Shown here piece by piece: positions 1,386-59,788 of a DNA stretch of 64,000 nucleotides. The position numbers were made by a program, and so were the translations under genes. Every line of letters begins with the position of its first letter. Position 1 is the stretch's first letter. The stretch spans positions 5,952,001 to 6,016,000 of the forward strand of contig CM106586.1 in the NCBI GenBank assembly GCA_048013815.1, in the 5' to 3' direction. This DNA is from Setoptus koraiensis. Taxonomy: Eukaryota > Animalia > Arthropoda. The notes under the pieces were generated by a model, which was given only the letters and a program-made list of their open reading frames with translations, did no database searches and was not told where the DNA came from.

Positions 1386-4300
1386 CATTTTGTAGACGCG
1401 AATCGTATGAGACGCCGCAACAAACCGACGCTGGCCAGTGATCGGGCGAAGCACGACGCTGTTGTTGTTATGTCATCACTGGACCCATCAGCTGTAGCAG
1501 TGACAGCTCACCTGTCATTACTTGCCTGACCAGTGCGTCTTGTGCAGCCTGTCAGCCACTGGTGATGCAATTGGCCAGCCAATCAATTGCATCATCATTG
1601 TGCGGTCATCGTTGGTGCGATCTGACGCCTACAGTCTGCATCGTCTAGTGGGCATCGTCTTGTGGGCATCGTCTTGTGGGCATCGTCTTGTGGGCATCGT
1701 CTAGCCTGCATCATTTAGTCTACATCATACACAGTCTAGACGGCAATACACATGCGACAGTGCCGACAGTGCCGACAGCACCGGAAGTGACCGTCAATTG
1801 TCAATTGTGAATTTGGCGGTCATTTGTGCGAGCAAAATATTAGCTATACTGCATTGGCATGTCAGTGTTTACTTTTGGGCCACTGTTAAGCCACCATACC
1901 ATACATTACGTACACTACCTATGTTATGTTACGTAACATCAGCAACATATCGGCGTGACATTGGGCCCGTTATGTTATTGCTATAGCCTAATAGTCGCTA
2001 ATAGTTGCTGTCGGCGACACTGTTAGGCTAAGCAAACGACTGTGGGCCACATAATAAAATATAATACAACAATAATAGCCATGCTCATGTCTCAATGGGT
2101 ACGTCTCAAAAGCAAACAAACAACAATATTCAGTATGTTAACAGGCCAATAACTTGCCAGGTCTCAATAAATGCAATTTGTCGTCTGTGTTGACATGTCT
2201 GAGAAGCAAATTGCTGCAAGTTGTTGCACTTGTCTAGACTGTCTGTAAAATATTGATTAGCGACGAGCAAACAAACTGTTCCCATCTAGACAAACAACAT
2301 TGACAGCAACATTTTTGTTACAAGCGTATATTATGCGTATCTAGTCATATCTGCATGCCGCCTAATTGTGCTAATTGTGTGAGCAATCATATTACTTGCA
2401 ACAATGCATCAATTACATCAATACACGTGTTTGCTCGTGCTCGTTTTTCACCAATTGCCACTACATTGCCAACCATCAAATAAACAAATGTTTGAAATAA
2501 ACGAATGTTTGAAATGTCTTCGCTGGGGCCAAACTCGCGCCAACAATAGTTACTCGTAGTGGCCTCCAGACGGCAACGTTGTAATGAGTTTTATTTTTTA
2601 GTTTGTTTCAGTTTACCTGGCCACAACTCTCAATTTGTGACATTGCACTTGGGTCCCCTTCCGCTCGACCCATTTCAGATGTGAGCGCGATTAAATTGTC
2701 TGAAAATGTTGTTAATGTGAAAATGTCTCCACAGTTTGTGACTAAAAAAATGGCAGCCACTCTCGCAGCTACAAAATAGCAGCAGCAGCACGCATTCTTT
2801 CACGTGTCCGTTTTAATTAAAATTGAAAATTCAATTTGATCAGCATTGTCAGTGTGTCACGTTGCGTTGGTCGCAACAAACAAAATACTGGCTGCACAGG
2901 TGAGCAGCAGCGTGCATGATGTCAAATAAGCCGACTGGCGGCCCAAACTGGAATGTTTTCTCATTGGCCCTACACGAGCCAGCGGTCAGCTTGCTGTCAA
3001 GTGCACCAGATCATCAATATTCGGACAGTAGCACAACAAACACAATCTAACAGACCCACGGACAGACCCAAAGAGAGACAGACAGACGGACGGACGCTTG
3101 ATTGACGGGTGAATTATGTAATAGTTATGTGACAGGCAATTAGTTAATTTTGCCAATGTCAGAATAATAACACATTCATGAGTATTCATTGCGGCACGCA
3201 TTCATGAATACTGGGCGAATAATCGACAGCTACTGACGCGTGAATAATCCAACCAAACAACCGCTACATCTCAATGTATTAATTGCGGCGTACGCCAATC
3301 ATGAATATTTGTGCAAACAATGTGGATATTCACTCGTGAACGCAACAATCGATTGTTGGCAAGCCAGATATTGGCACAAGATTCACGATTGGCGTTGATT
3401 TGTTTCTAATTGAGGCTGCATGCATCTGGCGCACCGTTGGGTATTTGTGGATGGCGTCTAAACAGCAGACGGATAGTCGCGTATAGACGTAGGTGAGTAT
3501 CGTTGGCGAGTATCGTTCGCGTATAGATACGTGAATATAGAGGAGAAGAGTAAGCAGCGAGAAAGGGAGGAGGTTACGCAAGTGAGTAGCACAAATCATG
3601 GCGGCCAAGTAACGCGCTGGCTCGCGTGATCGACGACAAAACAATGGCGCTTGCCGGATAAGTGTCGAAATGTCGGATAATTGGCAAGCACGACTATAAC
3701 GGCGGATAAGGGCGGATAAGGGCGAGCGATAACAAAAGATGAATTGGCACGATAGATACATTTGTCTAATCAGCAGCCGGGGTTAGAGCCACGCTGCTCG
3801 CCAAGGTGCGCTGCTGGGGCCGTCGGGGGATCATACACAAATACGTTTTGACATGTTGTTGAGCCTGTAATTATCTTGAGCGAGACAACGGCGTTGTTTT
3901 GGTCGTTTTGTGTATGCTGATACGATACGCGATGCAAGCGGCGCCTAGCAGCAGATTATGTGTAGTTGTTGTTGCCGTTGTTGCGGTTGTTGCTGTTGTT
4001 GCTGTTGCTGGCGTTGTTGCTGTTGCTGCTGTTGCTGCTGTTGTTGCTGTTGTTGAGAGACTGGCCATATTGTCTGGCGTGTCGCTGTTTGCGGAACAGC
4101 CAGCCAGAACAGGTGCGAGGGGCGACATTACAAAGACGATGAGTCATTTTCGCATGGCCACGCCGCAACGGGGCCCCTCGTTGATACCGAGTCAGCGCGA
4201 CTGAGTCGGCGATACTGAGTCAGCACGGCACGAGTATATGTGCGGATCTGAGGTGGATATGTGCGCGGGTATGGCACGGATATGGCACAGATATGGCGTG

Positions 4301-6642
4301 CATATAGCGCGTATATGGCGCGTATGGAACGTAAATAAGCGGAACAGCGGGATTAGGCAACGGTATTGTTGCGCAATGTAGCATGCTGGGCCGCCGCCGC
4401 GTCGCTCAACTAACTAGTTGTAAGCGTGCCCGTTATAAAAATGACACAGGGCACAGGTGAGCGGCCGGCCAAGATCGATGGGTGCGCGCGCGAGCGGATG
4501 CAGTTGTCGCAATTGCGCTGTTGCTGTTGCGCCAATTTGCCAACAGCTTGCCGGCTCGTTGCACAGGTGACTCATGAGAGGTGAGCGCGGGCCCAACAGA
4601 TAACTCACAACTACTGTTGGGTGAGACTTAAAAATGGTGGCCACCAGCGCCGGTGTGTCTCTGGCGAAACGGGGCACACAAAATTTGTGTTTGTGCCACA
4701 AATTGATAAGTTCAACACTGGGCGCATACTTTACATGTAAAGTCGCATTGGGCAGCGGCCAGCGAGCAACAACGACGCGCCCAATATCCAATATCTGAGT
4801 GGTTGTGAGGGGCCCCAGCGAGACCAGATGAACGGTGAAAGAATTATTGTTGTTGTGCCTGGCGCAGGGACAAATCGCCTGAAACATGCGCGTCAGCGAG
4901 CGGCCCGCCGAGAAAAGGAGAAACCATCATTAATTACGCCAGTTCCTCTCAATAACCAATGCGCGCCACGTGTAAGCCGGCGCTCACCTTGGCGCTCGCC
5001 TAATGATAATACTTTCTATCTGGCGCTGCCAATAATACTGGCTAAATTCACTCGGAACTGGCTCACAATGTTGTTAGATAGACGGGCCGGGCCGGGACAG
5101 CAATCAATGGTCAGTAACGGGCAACAACAATCTAGCGCATCTCGTTGTTGTCCGAATGCGCGCTTTATTATTGCAAAAGTGGTAACGGGCGGTCTCATTA
5201 CTCGACTTATTGCCGGGATATTATTCACGGGAGCCGCGCACTGTGGCCACTATTAGAGGCGAAAACTGCTCATATTGAGCCAGTCTTGCATAGAATGTAT
5301 TAATGGCAGCAACAACGCCCTTACACTGTGTTCCTCCGATAATAATACTCGCGCCGCGCTGGTTAGACGTGCGACTGTCGCGTGGGCCTCTCCGTGGGCC
5401 CCTACGGCCCACAGACTATGGGGCCTCATAGAGGCCTCATAGTCTATGAGCCGCGTGGGCTCTATGGGGCGGCCATCGGTTTGGCCGTGTTTGCACGAGA
5501 CACACCGACGAGCCCTCTGGCTGTACGCCGAAAACCTGGCCGGTTGGCTGGTTGGCTGGCTGGCTGGCTGGCAGCGAGCGCCGGCGAGCAGCAAATGACA
5601 AAACGATTGCCCCTTGCCCGCGCCACTAATGGACTTCTGCTTCGACGGTCCCCCCTCCCCCATCCCCGAACAGACGAGCGCCAGACACTGACAATTGTCG
5701 GCGCAGTTTGCACTCACATCCAGTCGGCAGCGACTTCTCCGACAACGCACAACAATCACCTTTGTTTGCTGCTGTGCGGCTCGCTGCGATATGAGGCCGC
5801 CGCTAGTTTGGCGATATGAGGCCGCCGCTGGTTTAGTCAGCTGTCTATACTGGTAGTATGATACTAGTGGGGCATAATACTACAGGTGAGCAGCGGGCAT
5901 ATTGCTGGTGTGTGCGATATGTGTCACAGCGGCCACACAAACCGAGGGCCCGATTGTGTCAGTGGGGCCCCTGCCGCACACAACAGCGACTTTTTTCGCT
6001 GTCGGCTGCTCACAGTCTGCGAGTTACAGTCTGCGAGTTACAGACTGTAAGTTACAAACTGTAAGTTACAAACTGTAAGTTACGGGTAAATAGAATAGAT
6101 GGCGTAAATAGCCAGATATGCACTCGCCAACACACGCCGTTTCCGTCACCCATCAAACAATCTAGCCAACACACAAACACGAGCAACAAACCGGAAGTTG
6201 GCTGCTCGCTGCGCAGCTCAAATGTCGCGTGCAATTGGCGTGTGTGTGTGTCAGTTTTGTTTTGCATAGGCGGCCGATCGGGGCCAGTCACGGCAAGTCA
6301 CAGTTAATCGATGAAATAAAACGATTGCTACAGCCAGTCAGCGGCATACGATTGTGCGATATTTGAACAATTTCGACAGTGGCCCCCGAACACACCTGAC
6401 ACTCGTAAGACAATGAAACAATTGGCCGGGCGCAAGCGGTCAATTTGTCGCCGTGGCTCGGTGATATTCGCGCATTTCGACCAGTGATCCGACGATGTGT
6501 CCGATGAATGCGATGCGAATGTGCGCACATTTGTGTGTGTGTGTGTGTCGTGCCAATGCGCGATCGCTACCCACAAGTTGTGAGTCTGAGTAACTCAGAT
6601 GAGCGATGCCACCAATGAGCACTCACCATACCAATACCGCAC

Positions 6643-47530: not shown

Positions 47531-49017
47531 GGCTGGCGCTGATGATGGCGACCGGAATGTTGCAACTTAATTGTTTTGGCCGCCATCGCAAAAGTCCTGC
47601 TCCCTCGGGCCGACGATACCTGCTGACGGACTTGTGAGCAGTGGCGCGTTTATGACGAGATGATTGGCCGCATTAGGCCGACCTATATCATCATCAGCTG
47701 ACTCTTTATCGGCTCAATGCTGCTCGCCGGCATGTCCGGTTCGTCGGCCAACCAGGTGATGCGCAGGCGCAGCCTGTAGGTAACAGGCTAATGGGCAGCT
47801 AATGGGCACCATCAATACAATGCAATCAAAAGCTGGCTTGTGTAGCTGGCCATTTAGACTTGTGCGTGTCCGTTTTGATGATGCAACAACAGTGTTGCGT
47901 AACTGGCCAAACAAGGCCAACACAAACAATTGGGTCTGAATGCCACTTGTTGTTGGCAATAAAATCTCTCTAGCTCGCTTGGCATAATAATATTCTCAAT
48001 TTGTGCCGGCTCGGTCAGCTCACGTCAGCAGTGTCCGTTGAATCAGGCGCCTATTTGTTTGCTGTTCTATATATTATTATGAGTTCGATAGCGTCCGATC
48101 GAGCTGGCCAGCGATCAGAATGATCACTCGCAAACAGTGGCTACCAATGGCAGCAGTGCCCATGATGACGCGAATAAATGCTAATGTTATTGCGTAATTA
48201 TAAGAAGCGAGCGCCAGCAGCAAACAAAATCATCATTTATAGTCATAGTTTATTAAATCTATGGCTCAATTATCGGCTGATGAATGGCCTCTGCCGCCAG
48301 CGACCACCATCGGCAATAAAAGTCGCTGTAGTTGTTGTTGTTGTTGTTGTTGCCGCTGCTGTCGCTGTTATATCTCGGCCTCACATTGACTCGCGAGCCA
48401 GTGTAATTGCCGCTGTTATCATTATCTGTGCCATCATCAGACATAACCGTTCCAATTGTCGGCGAGCTAGGCAAACGAGCGAGGAGCCCATTGCACTCAA
48501 TTGGGTCCATCATCAAATTGATGAATTGCCCCTTCCAATGCCATAATACAAGCCACACGCTGGCGATCGATTTCAGTCGCTCGTTCGATTGGGTGCGCGT
48601 TACGATGGGCGAGTAATAACCAGATAAGTAGTAGTATAGGCGAGTTGCATCTAGCCAGCTTGACAGCAATTCAATCCGAGATATATCAACGGTGCACAGA
48701 TCAACGGGGGGTTGGCCTTCATGGGGCACCCAACAACTGCGAATACAAAGGGTGCCCAAAAACTGAGAACAGTTGTGGCGGGCACATTTGAAGCGATTTT
48801 TACGCGCCACTTTGTGATGCGTTCATAGTCGGTAATAGCATTGCTATTATAACAAAGGACAATCAGCGAGCAAGATTGGCGACAAACGACAATTGCTGGC
48901 AATATTATCACATATTACGAACTAATCAACTGTTTGTGGGGGCGCTGGCCAGTTCATTATCTGAGCCAGTTTCGCGACGACAGTGCGACTGAATGGCAGA
49001 AAAGTCTCCTCTAATTA

Positions 49018-49886
49018 TACATTCCAGTCCAATATCAGCTAAAGTCACCTGTTCAAGCGACTCTAGCAACTCGGGCTGCTCTGGCCATTTTGCCTCATTG
49101 ATTGATCGACCATAATAGGCAATAAAACAAAATGGACAGCTAATTAAATGCACATGTGCACTGACCAGGTGAGTGTTGGCTACAATTAAGGGCCAATGTT
49201 GTAATCGCTGTGCGATGGTGAGTACATTTGAATGGCATTTGACTTTGATTTTAGTTAGTGTCGTTGTCTGATGTTGTTGTTGATTGTTGTTGGCTCGGCT
49301 CGCTTTGAGTCGATGGCCTATAGAGTGGCCTCAATGGCGAGATTTCCCATGAGATGTTGGCACATCTATTCGCAAACGAATCCAACGAAAACAATTGAGA
49401 TATATATGTATTGTTTATATGTTGTTTATATATGATCAACGACGTGAGCCAATAAACAAGGAGAGAAAAAACGTTGCGCTGTATAGCTCGTGTTTGGGTC
49501 ATGTTCAGCCATGTTTAGCCGTGTTTGGCATTTGACGCGAGTGACTGTGAAAATGTGTGTCGGTCAGAAGTGACAGAGAATCGCTAAACGATGATGATAA
49601 AGGTATGATGATGAGATGATAGATAAATGATGGGCCAATTAGGCCCAATAGCCCGCCGAAACAATTGCAATTGATCGCGGGGGCGGCAACACATCAAAAA
49701 ACAACAACTTGCTACAACAAAACAAATTATTGCTGATTGCTGATTGTTGCTCGTCGCTGATTGTTGCTTGTTTCTTGTTGTTTGCATGTTGCCGACTGTC
49801 ATATAATCAAGGTAATAATGGCAATCACTCATACTGTTTATGTTTGCTTGCACGCTCACAACACGCCCGATAACAACTTGCTATAA
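49018..49886. repeat. Direct repeat R1 core (copy of adenylyl cyclase intron 5 sequence)
   Basis: Near-identical to 53606-54485 (about 10 substitutions seen by eye, ~4.6-kb offset). Confidence 0.95.
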
Positions 49887-50548: not shown

Positions 50549-52337
50549 TCAGTCTATGTCGGTTTCTTGTTGCTCGCCTGACTCTAGCGTCAGTGTTGCA
50601 CTTGCCGGATTGGTGGGCTCGTATTCGTATGATTCATAGATGGACGGCGAACGAGGCAATTGTTTGTTGGCCGTTTCTTCGGCGCTTTCGCCATCTTGCG
50701 CATCAAACGGCGTCTTCACCAAATAGGTGGTCAGTCTGCCCTTGCCTTTGACCTCTATGGGGCCCCGGCATTCAACCTCAAATTGACCGTGTTCCATGAG
50801 TATGCCCGCCATGTGCTCTGTCACCTGTATTCTGCCCATCATGCCGTTGCTTTCTAAACGAGACGCTGTGTTCACTGTGTCGCCCCAAATGTCGTATTGC
50901 GGCTTCGAGGCACCTACAAATCAAAGTGATCAAATCAAAATTATGGCCACAAATCATCACGTTGTTNNNNNNNNNNNNNNNNNNNNNNNNNNNNNNNNNN
51001 NNNNNNNNNNNNNNNNNNNNNNNNNNNNNNNNNNNNNNNNNNNNNNNNNNNNNNNNNNNNNNNNNNNNNNNNNNNNNNNNNNNNNNNNNNNNNNNNNNNN
51101 NNNNNNNNNNNNNNNNNNNNNNNNNNNNNNNNNNNNNNNNNNNNNNNNNNNNNNNNNNNNNNNNNNNNNNNNNNNNNNNNNNNNNNNNNNNNNNNNNNNN
51201 NNNNNNNNNNNNNNNNNNNNNNNNNNNNNNNNNNNNNNNNNNNNNNNNNNNNNNNNNNNNNNNNNNNNNNNNNNNNNNNNNNNNNNNNNNNNNNNNNNNN
51301 NNNNNNNNNNNNNNNNNNNNNNNNNNNNNNNNNNNNNNNNNNNNNNNNNNNNNNNNNNNNNNNNNNNNNNNNNNNNNNNNNNNNNNNNNNNNNNNNNNNN
51401 NNNNNNNNNNNNNNNNNNNNNNNNNNNNNNNNNNNNNNNNNNNNNNNNNNNNNNNNNNNNNNNNNNAGGATGAATTTGAGCCAAACGTTGACACGAATGA
51501 ATATGCTTGTAGCTGTCATGGCCATGATGATAGTGAACGTGTAATACTTAAAAAAAGAATAATTTTTAAATTTCGTGAGACAATTAGCTGAGATTATGGT
51601 ACAAATTGATCGGCTCAATCATAATTGCATGATTATATCAATGGCAAGTTGTTCCAGTGACTCACCCAGGCGAAGGCGCAATTCATCGACTCTATATGGC
51701 TCACATCCACATTACCATCGCTGTTCAGTCTTTCATCCGGCTGCCAAACATCGCGCCATCAATTAAATTCAATTAGATTACCATTAAATATTGATCACCT
51801 ATCGACATGCATGTAATATGTCAGCCATTGTAGAGTGCACTTACCACTATCAGGTCCACTAATTGCAGCATGGTCAATGAGGCGGATATTATCAGCCAGA
51901 GAAGAATCCTGAATTGGCCGCCAATCTGGCCAGATCATCATTTCGTTTTTATTGATTGAAAAAGAGGAACTTGTAAGCGTCAAATGCGATAAATGCATGT
52001 CAGTTTGGTCGGAGGACAAGTTTGAGACATGTGTCAAACAGTATCGGCGCTTATTATCACTTGGCCTCAACCCGTTATCGATAAACAATAAGAGTCGCCG
52101 GCCCTATGAAGACCACGAGGATAAGAATAGCAAGTGAAAAATTTGCTGCCAATCAACAAAATGTAACTGCATTGTTGGATATAAACAATGATACTTGTTG
52201 TGAATCACGTGTGCTCTTTGTTGGACATGGCAACAATAGAGGCCCACCTCGAAATCGATTCAGATCGCCGATTCTTGCTGCTTTGGTGACACATTGTTGC
52301 CTAAGAAAGAATGCAGAGAAAGAAAGAAATGGGCAAT

Positions 52338-52419
<82 letters not shown>

Positions 52420-55400
52420 GACAATGAACACAAAAGTCACTGAAAACCGACCGGGCAGGTTCAATTTGGGATTGGCCGGCAACGAATGACAAGCAGCGAC
52501 CACACAACTAGTGTTCTCACATGGCCAATCACAATCAGTCGGGCTGCTGTCATCAGGTTCGCTATAACTAAACAAATGGCCTCACAGTCAAAAGTTAATC
52601 TGTTCACTTTACGAGCCAATCCGACGCTAATCCGATTTGGTTAAACTACCAATAAACTAATAAAGAGTCAACTGCAACTCGTTTGAACAATCATCGATGA
52701 ATAAATTGAATCACCAACAGCGACTTGTTCGTTGCGTCATCAATGGCCGTAGTTTATAAACAATCTCTAATATCATGTAAAAATGTATTTATATGTGATG
52801 CAATATACAAATAATGAGAATTAAAGAGAATTATTCTCAAATGGTTTGCAACTCACCTTCAATTGTTTCCAATAAATGTAAATAAGTGAGATTATGATTG
52901 TTATAATGATAAATGCAAAACCAATGCATGTGTGACTGTAAATGGGCATGCCTGGTATTAGGCATCTAATGGCCAATATTGATAATGTTATTAGTCCAAC
53001 ACAAATGAGATACAAGTGAAACAATGGATCAAATTGGCTAGTTCTGTTCTTTTTGCCGCCAGCTTTGCCACGATTGCAATTGATAAAAAAGAACTGCTTC
53101 CAGGCCCTACATACGTTACGAATAACGATATAACAAATAAATGAACGTGTAAATATGCATGTTAGATAAACAAAGTGTTATAAACAAAGAGATAATACAT
53201 CGCCGATTTAGATTGAACCGATTGATTAGATTTGCTATCACTACGGTCGATATTGAATGATTAAATAATAAGTAGTAATAATAATAAGTAGTCGCATCTC
53301 ATGCCTCGCTCTGCAAGAAACCGAAACGTATGAGATATACGAGATGTAACAAAGCTAAACTAATCATCGTGGGGCAAAAAAAGGGCATCCGGATAAGTAG
53401 TCGAGGGTTGTTGACTGCGTTACTTTTAGCAGAGAAAAACTATTGCTGGCAATATTATTACAGGGGAACTTTTCTGCCGATTAACTGTTTTCAGAGGCGA
53501 CACCCAAAAGCCAAGTGACTAGCACCAGCGATCTAAGCATGTCTCATCAGACCAATGCGACTGAATGACAGACTGATCCGGCAACTTGACTGCTCTTCTA
53601 AAGTCTACATTCCAGTCCAATATCAGTACCGACAACGCTGAAATCACCTGTTCAAGCGACTCTGGCAACTCGGGCTGCTCTGGCCATTTTGCCTCATTGA
53701 TTGATCGACCATAATAGGCAATAAAACAAAATGGACAGCTAATTAAATGCACATGTGCACTGGCCAGGTGAGTGTTGGCTACAATTAAGGGCCAATGTTG
53801 TAATCGCTGTGCGATGGTGAGTACATTTGAATGGCATTTGACTTTGATTTTAGTTAGTGTCGTTGTCTGATGTTGTTGTTGATTGTTGTTGGCTCGGCTC
53901 GCTTTGAGTCGATGGCCTATAGAGTGGCCTCAATGGCGAGATTTCCCATGAGATGTTGGCACATCTATTCGCAAACGAATCTAACGAAAACAATTGAGAT
54001 ATATATGTATTGTTTATATGTTGTTTATATATGATCAACGACGTGAGCCAATAAACAAGGATAGAAAAAACGTTTCGCTGTATAGCTCGTGTTTGGGTCA
54101 TGTTCAGCCGTGTTTAGCCGTGTTTGGCATTTGACGCGAGTGACTGTGAAAATGTGTGTCGGTCAGAAGTGACAGAGAATCGCTAAACGATGATGATAAA
54201 GGTATGATGATGAGATGATAGATAAATGATGGGCCAATTAGGCCCAATAGCCCGCCGAAACAATTGCAATTGATCGCGGGGGCGGCAACACATCAAAAAA
54301 CAACAACTTGCTACAACAAAACAAATTATTGCTGATTGCTGATTGTTGCTCGTTGCTGATTGTTGCTTGTTTCTCGTTGTTTGCATGTTGCCGACCGTCA
54401 TATAATCAAGGTAATAATGGCAATCACTCATACTGTTTATGTTTTCTTGCACGCTCACAACACGCCCGATAACAACTTGCTATAATGCGCCATCATGGAC
54501 GTTCAAACGCTCACAATATCTGGCACAAGTCTAACAGGTAAAACAATTAATCAATTAATTGATGCCTCTATAACTGATAGGGCCAGGTAAACTGGCGACC
54601 ATAAATAAAAAGCAGATCACCCAGTGCTATAGGCGCTAAGGATAGAGGGAGAGCCCGCACAAGACCGCTGGCGACATTTCAGCGTCAGCAGCATTGTTTT
54701 TGGTCGATTGCAACAGCCGATTTTGCTGATCAACTTACTGTCCGAGGGGCATGTTTCCAATGGCCGATTTCATGGTTGAGTCCACTTTGGCGTGTATCTC
54801 TCTATACTTTTTCAAGCTCGTCTCCAGAGCGAGGCGTCGTTGAGCGAAATTCATGGCGTCGCTTGTCGAGCGTCCCTACACACATTTGTTGCACAACATT
54901 TTATAGGTGCGTAGATAAGATTATACATATGTGATAGGTAATAATAATAATTATGACATATATCAACAATTAGCTCACTATAAACATTGGCAATAATACC
55001 TACTCTGAGTTTCTCGATGTGCGCCTTGAGTTTCTCTGTTTGACCCCGTCGTTTAGCCATGGGCGACGCAGATAAATCGCTGGTGCTTACACTAATCCTT
55101 TCGGATATTAGATATGTTATCTCTGAGCCGCTTGTTGGTTGCGTTGAGGTTATAATTAAATTATCGCGCCGTTTGTCATTCTTAGGTATGAGATCCAATG
55201 TTCGTTGAGTGATATGTACAAAACCCGGCTGACCGTTGTGCTCCATCCTGTTTGCCTTCATGGCATCTATGGACCAAATGTCGAATTGCCATTTTCGTAA
55301 GCCGAGCAAGCCGGACAAAACAGAGCCCGAATTAACGCCAATGCGCATATCGATGTCCACCTGGCGAAGCTGACGGACAGAACTGCGAATATGTTTTAAA

Positions 55401-57242
55401 GGGAATACAATGGGTATTCAGGTTAGCATAAATGTATGAGCAGTGGGCGAGCAAATTCAAACGACAAGACAGTGGCGCGCTACGAAATATCCGGATATTT
55501 CAACCAGAAGTTGTGCAATATTCAAATATCGCATAACGAGCATTTATCGGGGCATTGATCGGAGGTTGGAGGGTACCCACTTGATGATCTTGATCATGTC
55601 GAGGCCCATCATGAGGCTGTTGATGGCATGGTCGATGTCGAATACTGGCAGGCCCGACACACAATAGTAACAGTCGCCCAGTAGCTTTATTCTGAGACAT
55701 TTGTTTTTCTCTGCGGACTCATCGAAGCGCCCATACAATTCATTGAGTGTTTCCACCAGTTCGGCGGGACGTAATTTGTCCGTTAGTGTCATCGAATTGA
55801 CAATGTCAGCATACAAAATGGTGACATTCTCGTATTTTTCCACATATAAATTGTAGAAGGGCTTAAATGGTGTCGCTTGTTGCTTGTACATTCGCGAAAT
55901 GGCATTTCTAATTTCGTCTCTAATTTGCTCTATCAAGTGCTGAGGAAAACACGATCTCAACAATTGCTCTTGTTGCTCTTTCTCATAATTCAATTTATAC
56001 GTAGACTGTATGCAGTAGCGATGATTTAAAAAGGTCCTCCTAGTGGCTATTTCAAGTAGAAATGTTATCTGAAAGCCAATCATGGCACTAGAGGCATAGA
56101 AAATAATATCGGCCACTGAGTATTGTGTCAGAAAGTCGGCCTTACAGTTGTTGTCCAAACGACTAATGTATGTGACGATAATCTCCAACGATGCTATCAC
56201 TATTGTCGCCGCACAAGATTGAATACGCGACGGAAATGGGAGAAAGACATGATTTGTTATAATGAGATAATAGGTGAGCCTGATGCGCGCCAACGGCGTT
56301 GATTGGTCGTTGACAAGTGCACATATGGCGCCGCCTGTTGACAGGTAAACATGGTTGGGATGAAGATACATTCAATCGGTTATTAATTAATATGTATTTA
56401 TAATATAATTAGTTTGATATATTTGCCTGAGGAGCTGGTGTTACTCACTGGCTTCGGCAAAAATCATAGCCAGCAGCACCGCCAGAGAGGCCATGGTGCG
56501 CGAAAATTTCGACCTCATCCATATTTTGTTGAACCAGATCAGTGTTAGGAATGCGCCAAAGACAAACAGTGATGCCAGTCTCATGAGTGCGGGCACTGAC
56601 GATATTTTCAAATATTGTTATAGATAGAAGAGAGTGAAAGTGTATATTAGATAATATATTCGAGACGTGGCAAACTTTCCACTGATGGTGTTTAGACAAC
56701 GGTAGAAAGTTCGAGCAAAGTCAGCCAACAGGTGAATGGTGTAGATGGGGCCTATCCACCTATCGTATGTAGCAAGTACATAGGGTGCTCGGGGTGCAGG
56801 GGAAACACTCACGTGGGTAGAGGTCGCTATAACGGGACAACAGGTACACTATGACCGCGCCCGCATTGAATATAATGTTCAATATTAATAGTACTACGAA
56901 AAAGGATTGTTGCAAGCGTGCCTGATAGGTGTGAAATAAACTCTCGGAATGTGTCAGTTTGAACTCTCGTCTCAAATCCTTCCACGACCATTTAGAGTTG
57001 ACGTCCAAATCTTGCTCCTCGTCGTGTTCTGTGGTCTCGTTTGTGCTCCAATCATCGCGATCTGGGCCGGTGTGGCTGTTGAGCGAAGCAAAATGATTTG
57101 TTTCATCTTGCGTCGTGAATCCTGTGTCGAGATTGCTTGTCGAAGATCCGCCAATATACAGATAATTATCATTGTCGAGATTGTTGTTGTCTATGTCGCT
57201 GCCAGAATTTGCATCCCAGAATCTTTCATTATTATACATCAT
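50549..57242 (-). CDS. Transmembrane (class III) adenylyl cyclase, at least 11 exons, interrupted by an assembly gap
   Basis: Exons 57242-56813, 56595-56449, 56334-55581, 55382-55004, 54875-54739, 53106-52857, 52300-52209, 51908-51845, 51740-51666, 51546-gap, 50913-50549; phase-consistent (exon 7/8 junction least certain). C1a: [46 protein letters not shown]2 end: [32 protein letters not shown]. Confidence 0.9.
50967..51466. other. Scaffold gap (500 N)
   Basis: Direct reading; falls inside the cyclase gene. Confidence 1.
52342..52417. repeat. (TC)38 microsatellite in cyclase intron 6
   Basis: Direct reading. Confidence 0.95.
53606..54485. repeat. Direct repeat R2 core, inside cyclase intron 5 (53107-54738)
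   Basis: Near-identical to 49018-49886. Confidence 0.95.
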
Positions 57243-58093
57243 GTTGTTGTGATTGTTGTTTGTCCACCAGCGAACCACAAACAAGCAAACAAACAAGATT
57301 TGTAGATAGAGAGGGAGAGAGAAGCGAACAACATTAATTGCACAAGCAACAACAGTAATCCACCTGTCTATGCCAGCTAAAGCCGGGTCGCCTGGCTGGC
57401 TGGCAGGCTCGCTATCAGGCGGCGAGTTGACATGGACATGTTAGTTTAGCGACATGATAGTTTCAGCAGAAACCGTTTAGACAACAAACAATGTTGTTGT
57501 TGTTGTTGTAATCACAATTGTGGCACCACAACGACGACTGGAGGGCGATAGGCGATAGGTGATACAAAACGCAATCATAAAATACAAACAAATATTGAAA
57601 GATGACAAAAGAAGCAGCGAAAAAATGTGTTTTCGTTTGAATCGCGCGCGCCTCTGTCTGCTAGCTAAATCACGGTTACACTTACACTGCACAAACATGA
57701 ATCGGCCAGTGCGGGAGGTTAATCTCGCTGTTTGTCTGTCTGCCCGTCCGTCTGGCTGGCTGTTTGTTAGCACAGCACTGCTTTGGATGTTGATCGTCAG
57801 TCAACCTATTTACGCACACTGTACTTATAATACATGATATAATTATTCAATCGTCATTTTGTTGAACAATCATTGTACATTGCTGACGATATTCAACATT
57901 TTCCAGAAGATTTGCCCACAAGATATTATCGTATATTTCTTGTCATACTGTAGTGTGTATCAATCAATTAACTAACACACACGCAACAATCACCGGATAA
58001 TAACACTGTACCAATTATCTCTCTTTTCCTCTCTTGTCACATTTAATAATTACAAACATTTGTCACTCAACCAACAAACATCATTTGTCAGAA

Positions 58094-59788
58094 ATGGATA
58101 GTGAAAGATTTTGGGACGGCGAAACCGCCGAGGACAATCTAGACGACGAAGATGACATCGGCGGCGATATAGACGCATTCAATGATGAAACATTTGGCAA
58201 TGCCGACGAATGGAACGAGGACGAACACGAAGAGCTCATAGCTCAAGACGAAATATTATCGGGTCCCGCTAGAATCAACACAAACCATCACAATAATAAT
58301 AATAACAACAACAACAACAACAACAATAATAATATGAACAACAACAACAATAATAATAATAATAATTTTAACATAATCAACAACAACAACAACAGAAGCA
58401 TGAGCAACAACAATACCAACGTCAACGATAACAACATTAGCGCCAATACAAACAGTCAGCAACAGTTCAATATGGTGATCGATGATTGCAGTTCAATATT
58501 TAATAATCTTCACATCAGCGCTGGGGCGGCCGCGGCAGCCGCCTTAGCAGCTGCTCACGGACATCCTCAAGGCCCCAGCATCAACGCCCAGTTCCCACAC
58601 CCAGGCCCTAGTGGTATGATTGGATGGAGTCCATTCGGAAGCAAAGATCTCTTTAATAACAGTCCCTATGGCGATCCCGGCGAACTATTAGCCCAGCAAC
58701 AACAATTTCTACTTCAACAACAGCAGCTGCTTCAACAACATATGAGCACACCTAGACTCCCAAAAGTGCAGACAGTAGAAGAGTTGGAGAGGCAGTTTTT
58801 TCTAGAAAGCCAACAGCAAGCAGCTCGCCAGCAACAAGCGGCTGCTTCCAATCAACAAAACAACAACTTGAACAACAACAACAATAATAATAATAACAAC
58901 CACAGCAACAACAGCGGCAACCAGCACCAGCATAATAATAACAAGAGCAGGCGACAACAGAACACATCAACAACAGATACCTCACGAGAGTACGGCCAAC
59001 AATCCTCCTCATCTTCTTCCAGGGGTCATCACACGAGGCAACAGCATCAGTCGGACCAGAAGAGGCATCAGAACCGAGAAAACCAACACCGGGATAACCA
59101 ACACCGAACTAATCAACATCGGGACAACCAACACAGAGATAACCAACACAGAGATAACCAACACAGAGATAACCAACACAGAGACAACCAACACAGAGAC
59201 AACCAACACCGAGATAATCAACACCGAGATAACCAACACCGAGATAACCACCATCACCACCAGAACACTAATAGAATTATTCAAAACGCGCGTCGGGCAC
59301 CCATGATTGTTCCACCCCAAGTGCAACTTGAAGTCATTGAAAAGTCTAAGAATTTGTACTCATTAACGGCAATGCACCCTGAAGAGTTTTTTATGGACAG
59401 AGTGCCTACAAGAAGCGATGGATTTCCTTTCAGAAATCACTCAGTCGAGAATCAAGCACAACATGACGGAGTGCTAAATGATAAAGAGAAAAATTGGCTT
59501 GTTAAAATTCAGCAACAAATTCAGTTACAGTTTGACAATAACATCGAAGAAGACTACTATCATATATTATATCAAATGAAAAAAGGAAATTCTCTTACAT
59601 GCGATCATAATGAACTCACAAACAGGCACCTGCAAATGGTTAACGCGGATACACAGCAGTCGTCAGCATTGTACTCGCCACGACAATTCATTGGTTCACT
59701 TGGCAAAATATCAGTATCTACTGTTAATTGTCCTCGTCAATTGTTGGATATGGGCAATACTAGTGAGCCGGTTACATCGTTTGAATAA
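58094..59788 (+). CDS. PATL1: PAT1 homolog (mRNA decapping activator/P-body scaffold), intronless, ~564 aa, no PatC domain seen
   Basis: N-terminal acidic region with [17 protein letters not shown]; Mid-domain motifs [17 protein letters not shown] and [22 protein letters not shown] (MDSERFWD) at 58094. Confidence 0.88.
59081..59245 (+). repeat. Coding 15-bp tandem repeat, (NQHRD)x11, in PAT1
   Basis: 11 units counted; variation is mostly synonymous. Confidence 0.95.

Follow-up and report, generated by a model that had tools for sequence, protein, structure and literature searches.

Can an enzyme of cyclic AMP (cAMP) synthesis acquire its N-terminus from the gene next door? The question is raised by a 64,000-nucleotide (nt) stretch of the arthropod Setoptus koraiensis (GenBank assembly GCA_048013815.1, contig CM106586.1, positions 5,952,001 to 6,016,000, forward strand; hereafter the window), in which an adenylyl cyclase gene on the minus strand and a PAT1 gene on the plus strand diverge from a common spacer. 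The initial annotation of this DNA had proposed that the cyclase N-terminus is a captured, inverted copy of the PAT1 N-terminus, and the peptides, coordinates, spacer length and DNA echoes (short stretches of similar nucleotides in the two genes) that it gave are all correct. From sequence comparisons we put the probability that the cyclase is a chimeric gene with a PAT1-derived N-terminus at about 0.8. The features in question are listed here with the evidence on which each rests; P0002 (locus L002) is the homologous cyclase exon of a related species, P0001 is a PAT1 protein from another assembly, X7 and X12 are runs whose contigs are described below, and omega is the ratio of non-synonymous to synonymous divergence (dN/dS).

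57242..56813, minus strand: coding sequence of cyclase exon 1, with a GTGAGT splice donor at 56812.

57006..57242, minus strand: the probably PAT1-derived N-terminal segment of the cyclase, codons 1-79, start codon included, ending EHDEEQDL (homology via P0002; frame and omega).

56813..57005, minus strand: the ancestral part of cyclase exon 1, consisting of the helix ahead of the first transmembrane segment (pre-TM1 helix) and that segment itself (TM1); common to 40 cyclase relatives.

57243..58093: the divergent spacer between the two start codons, 851 bp, the presumed shared promoter region (alignment with L002).

58094..59788, plus strand: the PAT1 open reading frame (ORF), 564 codons long and containing an RDNQH repeat as well as poly-N/Q tracts (ORF list; similarity to P0001; contigs of X12 and X7).

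58094..58258, plus strand: the N-terminal domain of PAT1, the proposed donor segment, reading MDSERFWD ... FNDETFG ... DEW ... EHEEL ... QDEIL (identity to P0001; published motif roles).

The ORF at 58094-59788 is a member of the PAT1 family, judged by its N-terminal DETF/DW domain and by its similarity in the Mid region. It is 59% identical to P0001 (577 residues) at the N-terminus and 44% identical over residues 397-504, and the N-terminus of P0001 reads EEFWD ... NDETFG ... W ... NEDEHEEL. The DETF helix and the next aromatic element (yeast FDF; metazoan DW, human Trp46) are conserved contacts of PAT1 with Dhh1/DDX6, and binding is abolished when DETF is mutated to four alanines (PMC3783180; bioRxiv 10.1101/402404).

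Are the two N-termini homologous? The two proteins of the window have ERFWD and some weak colinear blocks in common. Between them, the BLOSUM62 local score of 62 exceeds that of composition-matched shuffles (35±6), modestly, and is matched by 1-7 of 3000-5000 shuffles (p about 1e-3). The ERFWD block supplies nearly all of this score, and the longest DNA echo lies around the same block (17/19 nt; about p=0.02 under codon shuffling). From the window pair alone, the origin of the cyclase N-terminus is undecided.

The sister sequence P0002, found by an exhaustive HMMER search with cyclase exon 1, is far more informative. Over pre-TM1 and TM1 it is identical to the window cyclase at 63/64 residues (about 98%), with a synonymous divergence (dS) of about 0.59. 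Its N-terminus reads MDNERFWD ... NLDDNDN ... IG ... DFD ... HDETFA ... DEW ... NETEHDEE, and against the window PAT1 it scores 109, compared with 38±7 for shuffles (z=10.5; 0/5000); with ERFWD removed, z is still 6.8. Composition-adjusted BLASTP aligns P0002 residues 1-56 with PAT1 residues 1-47 at 46% identity (E=4e-5), in an alignment that starts at Met1 and reaches EH[DE]E. When P0002 is compared with the whole window by tblastn, the start of PAT1 comes second only to the cyclase itself (E=7e-9), and 22 of the 29 residues identical between P0002 and PAT1 share the same codon. When two PAT1s and two cyclases are aligned together, 20 columns are invariant (E-FWD, D, IG, D, DET, F, D-W, NE, EH-E, L). 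These alignments show the cyclase N-terminus to be homologous to that of the neighboring PAT1 and bear out the PAT1-like origin first proposed; and as P0002 and the window cyclase are orthologs, this conclusion extends to the N-terminus of the latter. A word-index protein search with the P0002 N-terminus returned only the self-match, adding no further fusion carrier. A PDB sequence search with the N-termini of P0002 and PAT1 had no matches and is uninformative, PAT1's own search being empty as well.

Which of the two families is the original owner of this N-terminus? Our comparison set consists of the 40 other HMMER matches to cyclase exon 1 besides P0002. They keep the pre-TM1 helix ([ED]-x-D-L-N-[ST]-K-W-S-W-K-N-L-K-R-E-F) and TM1. 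None shows similarity to the N-terminus of PAT1 or P0002 (all |z|<2), and the motifs FWD, DETF and EH[DE]E are present in 0/40; the initial annotation would have been refuted by such motifs in distant cyclase orthologs, and this outcome was not seen. P0001 carries the N-terminus and these 40 cyclases do not, which supports the direction from PAT1 to cyclase given in the initial annotation. By this distribution, PAT1 is the native carrier of this type of N-terminus, which is foreign to the cyclase.

The 12 closest cyclase relatives with a full N-terminus have 139-312 residues ahead of the pre-TM1 helix. Most of the closer outgroup cyclases share the N-terminal motifs SPIAEE, YVRTIKRII, ETSF, FEFxLPS and PPFARRYF (P0003-P0016, loci L003-L010); these ancestral motifs have no Pfam annotation and mark a conserved region that has been lost in the lineage of the window. 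A tblastn search of the 64-kb window for the ancestral cyclase N-terminus gave low-complexity noise only. PAT1 was not found upstream of the cyclase in L003, L004, L005 or L006/L007, the last a near-identical pair (1.8 to 9.9 kb examined). The adjacency of PAT1 and cyclase and the fusion are seen together, as a derived state.

The point of joining can be placed closely. Cyclase exon 1 opens with two adjacent ATG codons, at 57242 and 57239, and its last 64 codons encode the pre-TM1 sequence followed by a hydrophobic helix. The captured segment lies just ahead of the pre-TM1 helix, as originally described: the junction falls directly before D[LV]NSKWSWK, within a few residues of the boundary between EHDEEQDL and DVNSKW. 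On the PAT1 side it corresponds to codons 47-55, and on the cyclase side to the first residues of the pre-TM1 helix.

Is the PAT1-like segment translated? Between the window and L002 it contains six indels of 3, 6, 9, 6, 27 and 3 nt, all multiples of three; by chance, six frame-keeping indels have a probability of about 0.0014. The segment has a dN/dS of 0.23 (Fisher test of synonymous vs non-synonymous changes, p about 9e-4), compared with 0.012 at equal dS in the pre-TM1/TM1 part. In the outgroup cyclases, the N-terminus and the pre-TM1 helix lie in one continuous ORF. Frame conservation over six indels and a dN/dS below 1 show that the segment behaves as coding sequence under purifying selection.

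The arrangement of the two genes is not an assembly artifact and is conserved in a relative. A contig of X2, an independent run, spans 57083-58280 with zero differences, and a single contig from a diverged organism (X13, about 90% identity) carries, in colinear order, the cyclase C1 exon, exon 1, the spacer and PAT1. Because independent contigs span the arrangement, one of them from a diverged relative, a misassembly is excluded.

How old is the capture? The dS between P0002 and the window PAT1 is about 1.8, that between the two cyclases is 0.59, and that between the window PAT1 and P0001 is saturated. Since the divergence of the paralogous segments (about 1.8) exceeds that of the species (0.59), the capture is, by these estimates, older than the split of the two fusion-carrying species; from a short alignment, it appears to be younger than the split from the P0001 lineage.

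We propose the following course of events. In an ancestor that this species shared with one or more relatives at dS of about 0.6, the 5′ end of PAT1 would have been copied in inverted orientation, the copy reaching from the start codon to codon 47-55 and probably including some sequence upstream. This copy would then have been fused, in frame and immediately ahead of the pre-TM1 helix, to a class III transmembrane adenylyl cyclase, displacing the ancestral N-terminus (139-312 residues in the closest relatives), while PAT1 retained its own copy. Both genes would presumably be driven from the 851-bp spacer. We infer the inverted duplication and the expression from a shared spacer, as well as the replacement of the parental cyclase rather than a fusion to its duplicate. 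The donor PAT1 is retained, the copy is adjacent and inverted, and the fusion is not present in the outgroups examined. The inverted duplication claimed at the outset survives in part: the head-to-head geometry and the retained PAT1 start codon argue for an inverted partial duplication of the PAT1 5′ end, but no inverted repeat is left in the spacer. Such a duplication could have been local or could have formed at a rearrangement breakpoint.

Within the spacer, the block at 57635-57726 stands out by its much closer match to L002, the rest of the spacer being poorly conserved at a divergence of dS about 0.6, and may be a candidate shared promoter or regulatory sequence. It consists of three adjacent blocks nearly identical to L002. 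An Rfam search of the spacer gave sub-threshold chance matches only. A 323-nt contig of X7 starts at 57887 and extends into PAT1 with no difference from the window, which suggests a PAT1 5′ untranslated region (UTR) of at least about 200 nt if X7 comes from an RNA run; its PAT1-only coverage suggests that it perhaps does.

What would the cyclase have gained? The N-terminus of these cyclases is cytosolic by established topology, so a PAT1-type peptide at this site would be accessible to DDX6/Me31B. The new tail would be a short, acidic, disordered cytosolic N-terminus that contributes a start codon and a promoter context, at the cost of the ancestral N-terminal region. In support of retained binding, the Phe and Trp with which PAT1 contacts DDX6 are invariant despite near-saturated synonymous divergence, the Trp at the metazoan DW position being shared by all four aligned sequences. 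The DETF-to-W spacing of P0002 is likewise inside the range of the PAT1 proteins compared. We regard docking to DDX6/Me31B through the DETF helix and Trp as possible, at somewhat less than even odds, for the sister species, and as doubtful for this one.

Several observations count against a retained function. In the window cyclase, insertions have turned DETF into DET-NH-F, so that the contiguous motif, intact in P0002 (HDETFA), is missing; the F-to-W linker has been stretched to 14 residues, compared with 8 in P0002 and 6 in PAT1. The cyclase segment is also far less constrained than PAT1's own N-terminus: between X13 and the window there are 10 differences in 253 nt at the PAT1 start, and 59 differences plus 7 gaps in 580 nt at cyclase exon 1 and its flank. 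The tail is more constrained than neutral sequence and evolves much faster than PAT1's copy. A link to processing bodies (P-bodies) and decapping looks weaker, from the motifs, in this species (DETF split) than in the sister species (DETF intact).

These observations lead to the alternative that survives best, which concerns function and not origin: the capture was real, its gain was the promoter, the 5′ UTR, the start codon and the loss of the ancestral N-terminus, and the peptide, which no longer binds DDX6, persists merely as a short acidic disordered tail. We give it an even chance. The faster evolution of the segment relative to its donor and the six indels that it has taken speak for it, as do the two residues that break DETF in the window and the linker grown from 6 to 14 residues; moreover, an omega of 0.23 falls in the usual range for disordered regions. 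It has to account for the invariance of the DDX6-contacting F and W at dS about 1.8, and for a sister species that keeps DETF and D-E-W at PAT1-like spacing. It is more economical to suppose that what the cyclase chiefly received was a start codon with its promoter and 5′ UTR, its ancestral regulatory N-terminus being deleted.

It is tempting to speculate about the stronger possibility, namely that DDX6/Me31B docks on a PAT1-type peptide displayed by a membrane cyclase, although such functional wiring is unlikely. If true, DDX6 and repressed messenger ribonucleoproteins would be recruited to sites of cAMP synthesis, or PAT1 and Edc3 would be competed off DDX6, and there would be a direct physical link from cAMP signaling to the control of P-bodies and decapping. 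The idea is worth testing because cAMP signaling has already been tied indirectly to P-bodies: yeast Pat1 is phosphorylated by protein kinase A, according to work cited in bioRxiv 10.1101/402404, and a cAMP-praja2-DDX6 axis has been described in human cells (PMC12069581).

Returning to the chimeric origin itself, several points weigh against it or leave it less secure. Within the window pair, the local score without ERFWD is not above shuffles (a gap-lenient global alignment without ERFWD is reached by 15/3000 shuffles, p about 0.005), and composition-adjusted BLASTP gives E=0.024 over the ERFWD block only, which is marginal alone. The spacer contains no inverted repeat other than (AAC)n low-complexity matches, and the two upstream flanks align no better than shuffled sequence; both bear on the geometry of the duplication. 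The fusion is known from just two lineages, beyond which the nearest outgroups lie far away. Another cyclase gene that still has the ancestral N-terminus may survive elsewhere in the genome; an ancestral-type paralog was sought in the sister sample, in a search that was not exhaustive, and the outgroup proteins examined all come from other samples. None of the RNA runs searched for the cyclase exons contains them, and the contigs of runs X12 (labeled "RNA?") and X7 (kind unknown) cover the PAT1 side only.

The absence of exon 1 from these runs would also fit a different gene structure, in which part of PAT1 was duplicated, decayed and left a PAT1-like ORF that happens to lie upstream in frame, while the cyclase starts elsewhere, at an upstream exon or a non-AUG codon, and no chimeric protein is made. 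We consider this improbable: a decayed duplicate does not agree with a frame kept over six indels and an omega below 1 at dS 0.59, exon 1 has no in-frame Met, ahead of TM1 or elsewhere, besides the two at its start, the N-terminus and pre-TM1 helix of the outgroups form a single ORF, and no ancestral N-terminal exon was found in the window. A chance or convergent resemblance, with no common origin, between two N-termini that are acidic, of low complexity and rich in D, E and N would fit the marginal statistics of the window pair, but it is largely refuted and very improbable given the sister ortholog (z=10.5, E=4e-5), a match running end to end from the start codon with mostly shared codons, the immediate neighborhood of the two genes and the 0/40 other cyclases that are PAT1-like; that P0002 is itself an assembly chimera of PAT1 and cyclase is countered by the independent contigs.

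The minus-strand gene is a class III transmembrane adenylyl cyclase, since it has the Pfam AC_N domain and both Guanylate_cyc domains. PF00211 (Guanylate_cyc) matches the C1 ORFs and the C2 ORF with E-values of 3e-23 to 2e-12, and PF16214 (AC_N) matches ahead of C1 with E=1e-10, exceeding the curated cut-off. The closest named relatives are a spider "type 2-like" protein and an insect protein, and the Atlas cluster is mostly arthropod. These relatives point to an arthropod and to no narrower group such as the mites; Atlas matches to the septin are spread over several phyla. The other features of the gene are as follows.

50552..56617, minus strand: the other cyclase exons (Pfam, tblastn of outgroup proteins, ORF list).

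About 56444-56617, minus strand: exon of the transmembrane region.

55544-56371 and 54851-55360, minus strand: AC_N and C1 (Pfam).

50552-50875, minus strand: C2 (Pfam Guanylate_cyc).

About 50960-51470: within the cyclase gene, an assembly gap (Ns) that precedes the last C2-domain exon and hides part of the gene model.

The cyclase gene region also contains near-identical repeat pairs (49251-49859 and 53850-54458; 48926-49153 and 53519-53752), whose ORFs of 83 and 91 amino acids are nearly letter-identical; these are probably a dispersed or segmental repeat within introns.

On the PAT1 side, a Pfam search of the ORF at 58094-59788 did not match the PatC domain, and a word-index protein search with the Mid region had no matches and so added no PAT1 ortholog. 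The ORF stops after the Mid-like region, at 59788, and a septin ORF starts about 800 bp further on (60608). P0001 (L001 562-2295) stops at the matching point, with unrelated genes beyond it. PatC may be absent from PAT1 in this lineage, or it may be encoded by exons that were not found. A tandem pentapeptide, RDNQH, is present in about 11 units at about 59090-59270 of the window; the X13 contig lacks 45 nt of it (three units). A contig of X2 skips 58822-59502, which suggests a second allele or copy. At window positions 58181-58243, a contig of X7 has a second, diverged PAT1 N-terminus with P0001-like flanks (...NDIGSDIDAN before, RDSILS... after), and because of this the X7 sample appears to contain more than one related organism.

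How does this locus compare with known systems? Along its full length, the cyclase N-terminus is homologous to the DDX6 (Dhh1, Me31B)-binding peptide at the N-terminus of PAT1/PATL1/HPat (Sharif et al. 2013, PMC3783180). Like that domain, the cyclase tail is acidic and has a DET..F element, a Trp at the DW position and an EH[DE]E block; unlike it, the tail sits on a membrane cyclase, evolves faster and has a split DETF in the window species, and is a putative binder. The two species therefore form a natural contrast for the docking idea, DETF being intact in one and split in the other. If functional, the cyclase peptide would, like the FDF motif of Edc3, be a short linear peptide docking on DDX6; it would engage the FDF pocket and patch 3 of RecA2 and compete there with PAT1 and Edc3. 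Tral and 4E-T, discussed in this literature as well, are other carriers of short DDX6-docking peptides. In contrast to carriers of the Edc3 type, which are RNA-regulatory factors, the carrier here is a cAMP-producing membrane enzyme, and its peptide would have arisen by copying and not by convergence. A literature search for a fusion of adenylyl cyclase and PAT1 found no report. Were the peptide still to bind DDX6, it would directly couple a cAMP-producing enzyme to the machinery of mRNA decay and storage, the first physical link of this kind.

In class III transmembrane adenylyl cyclases, the variable cytosolic tail before TM1 is the usual site of isoform-specific partners. Unlike such tails, that of the window cyclase would be a wholesale replacement from an unrelated neighboring gene and not diverged cyclase sequence, so that an adenylyl cyclase would have exchanged its entire regulatory N-terminus in one step. 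Chimeric genes from partial duplications, including inverted ones at rearrangement breakpoints, are known from Drosophila. As in those examples, the donor is intact, a partial copy is fused in frame, the fusion is lineage-restricted and the copies lie head to head. Unlike them, the event is old (paralog dS about 1.8) and the non-coding part of the duplicate is no longer recognizable, for which reason the mechanism is not readable from the DNA. The locus would nevertheless be a clean case of exon capture from a neighboring gene, with donor, recipient, junction and outgroup state all readable, and the captured piece would be a defined protein-interaction peptide and not anonymous sequence.

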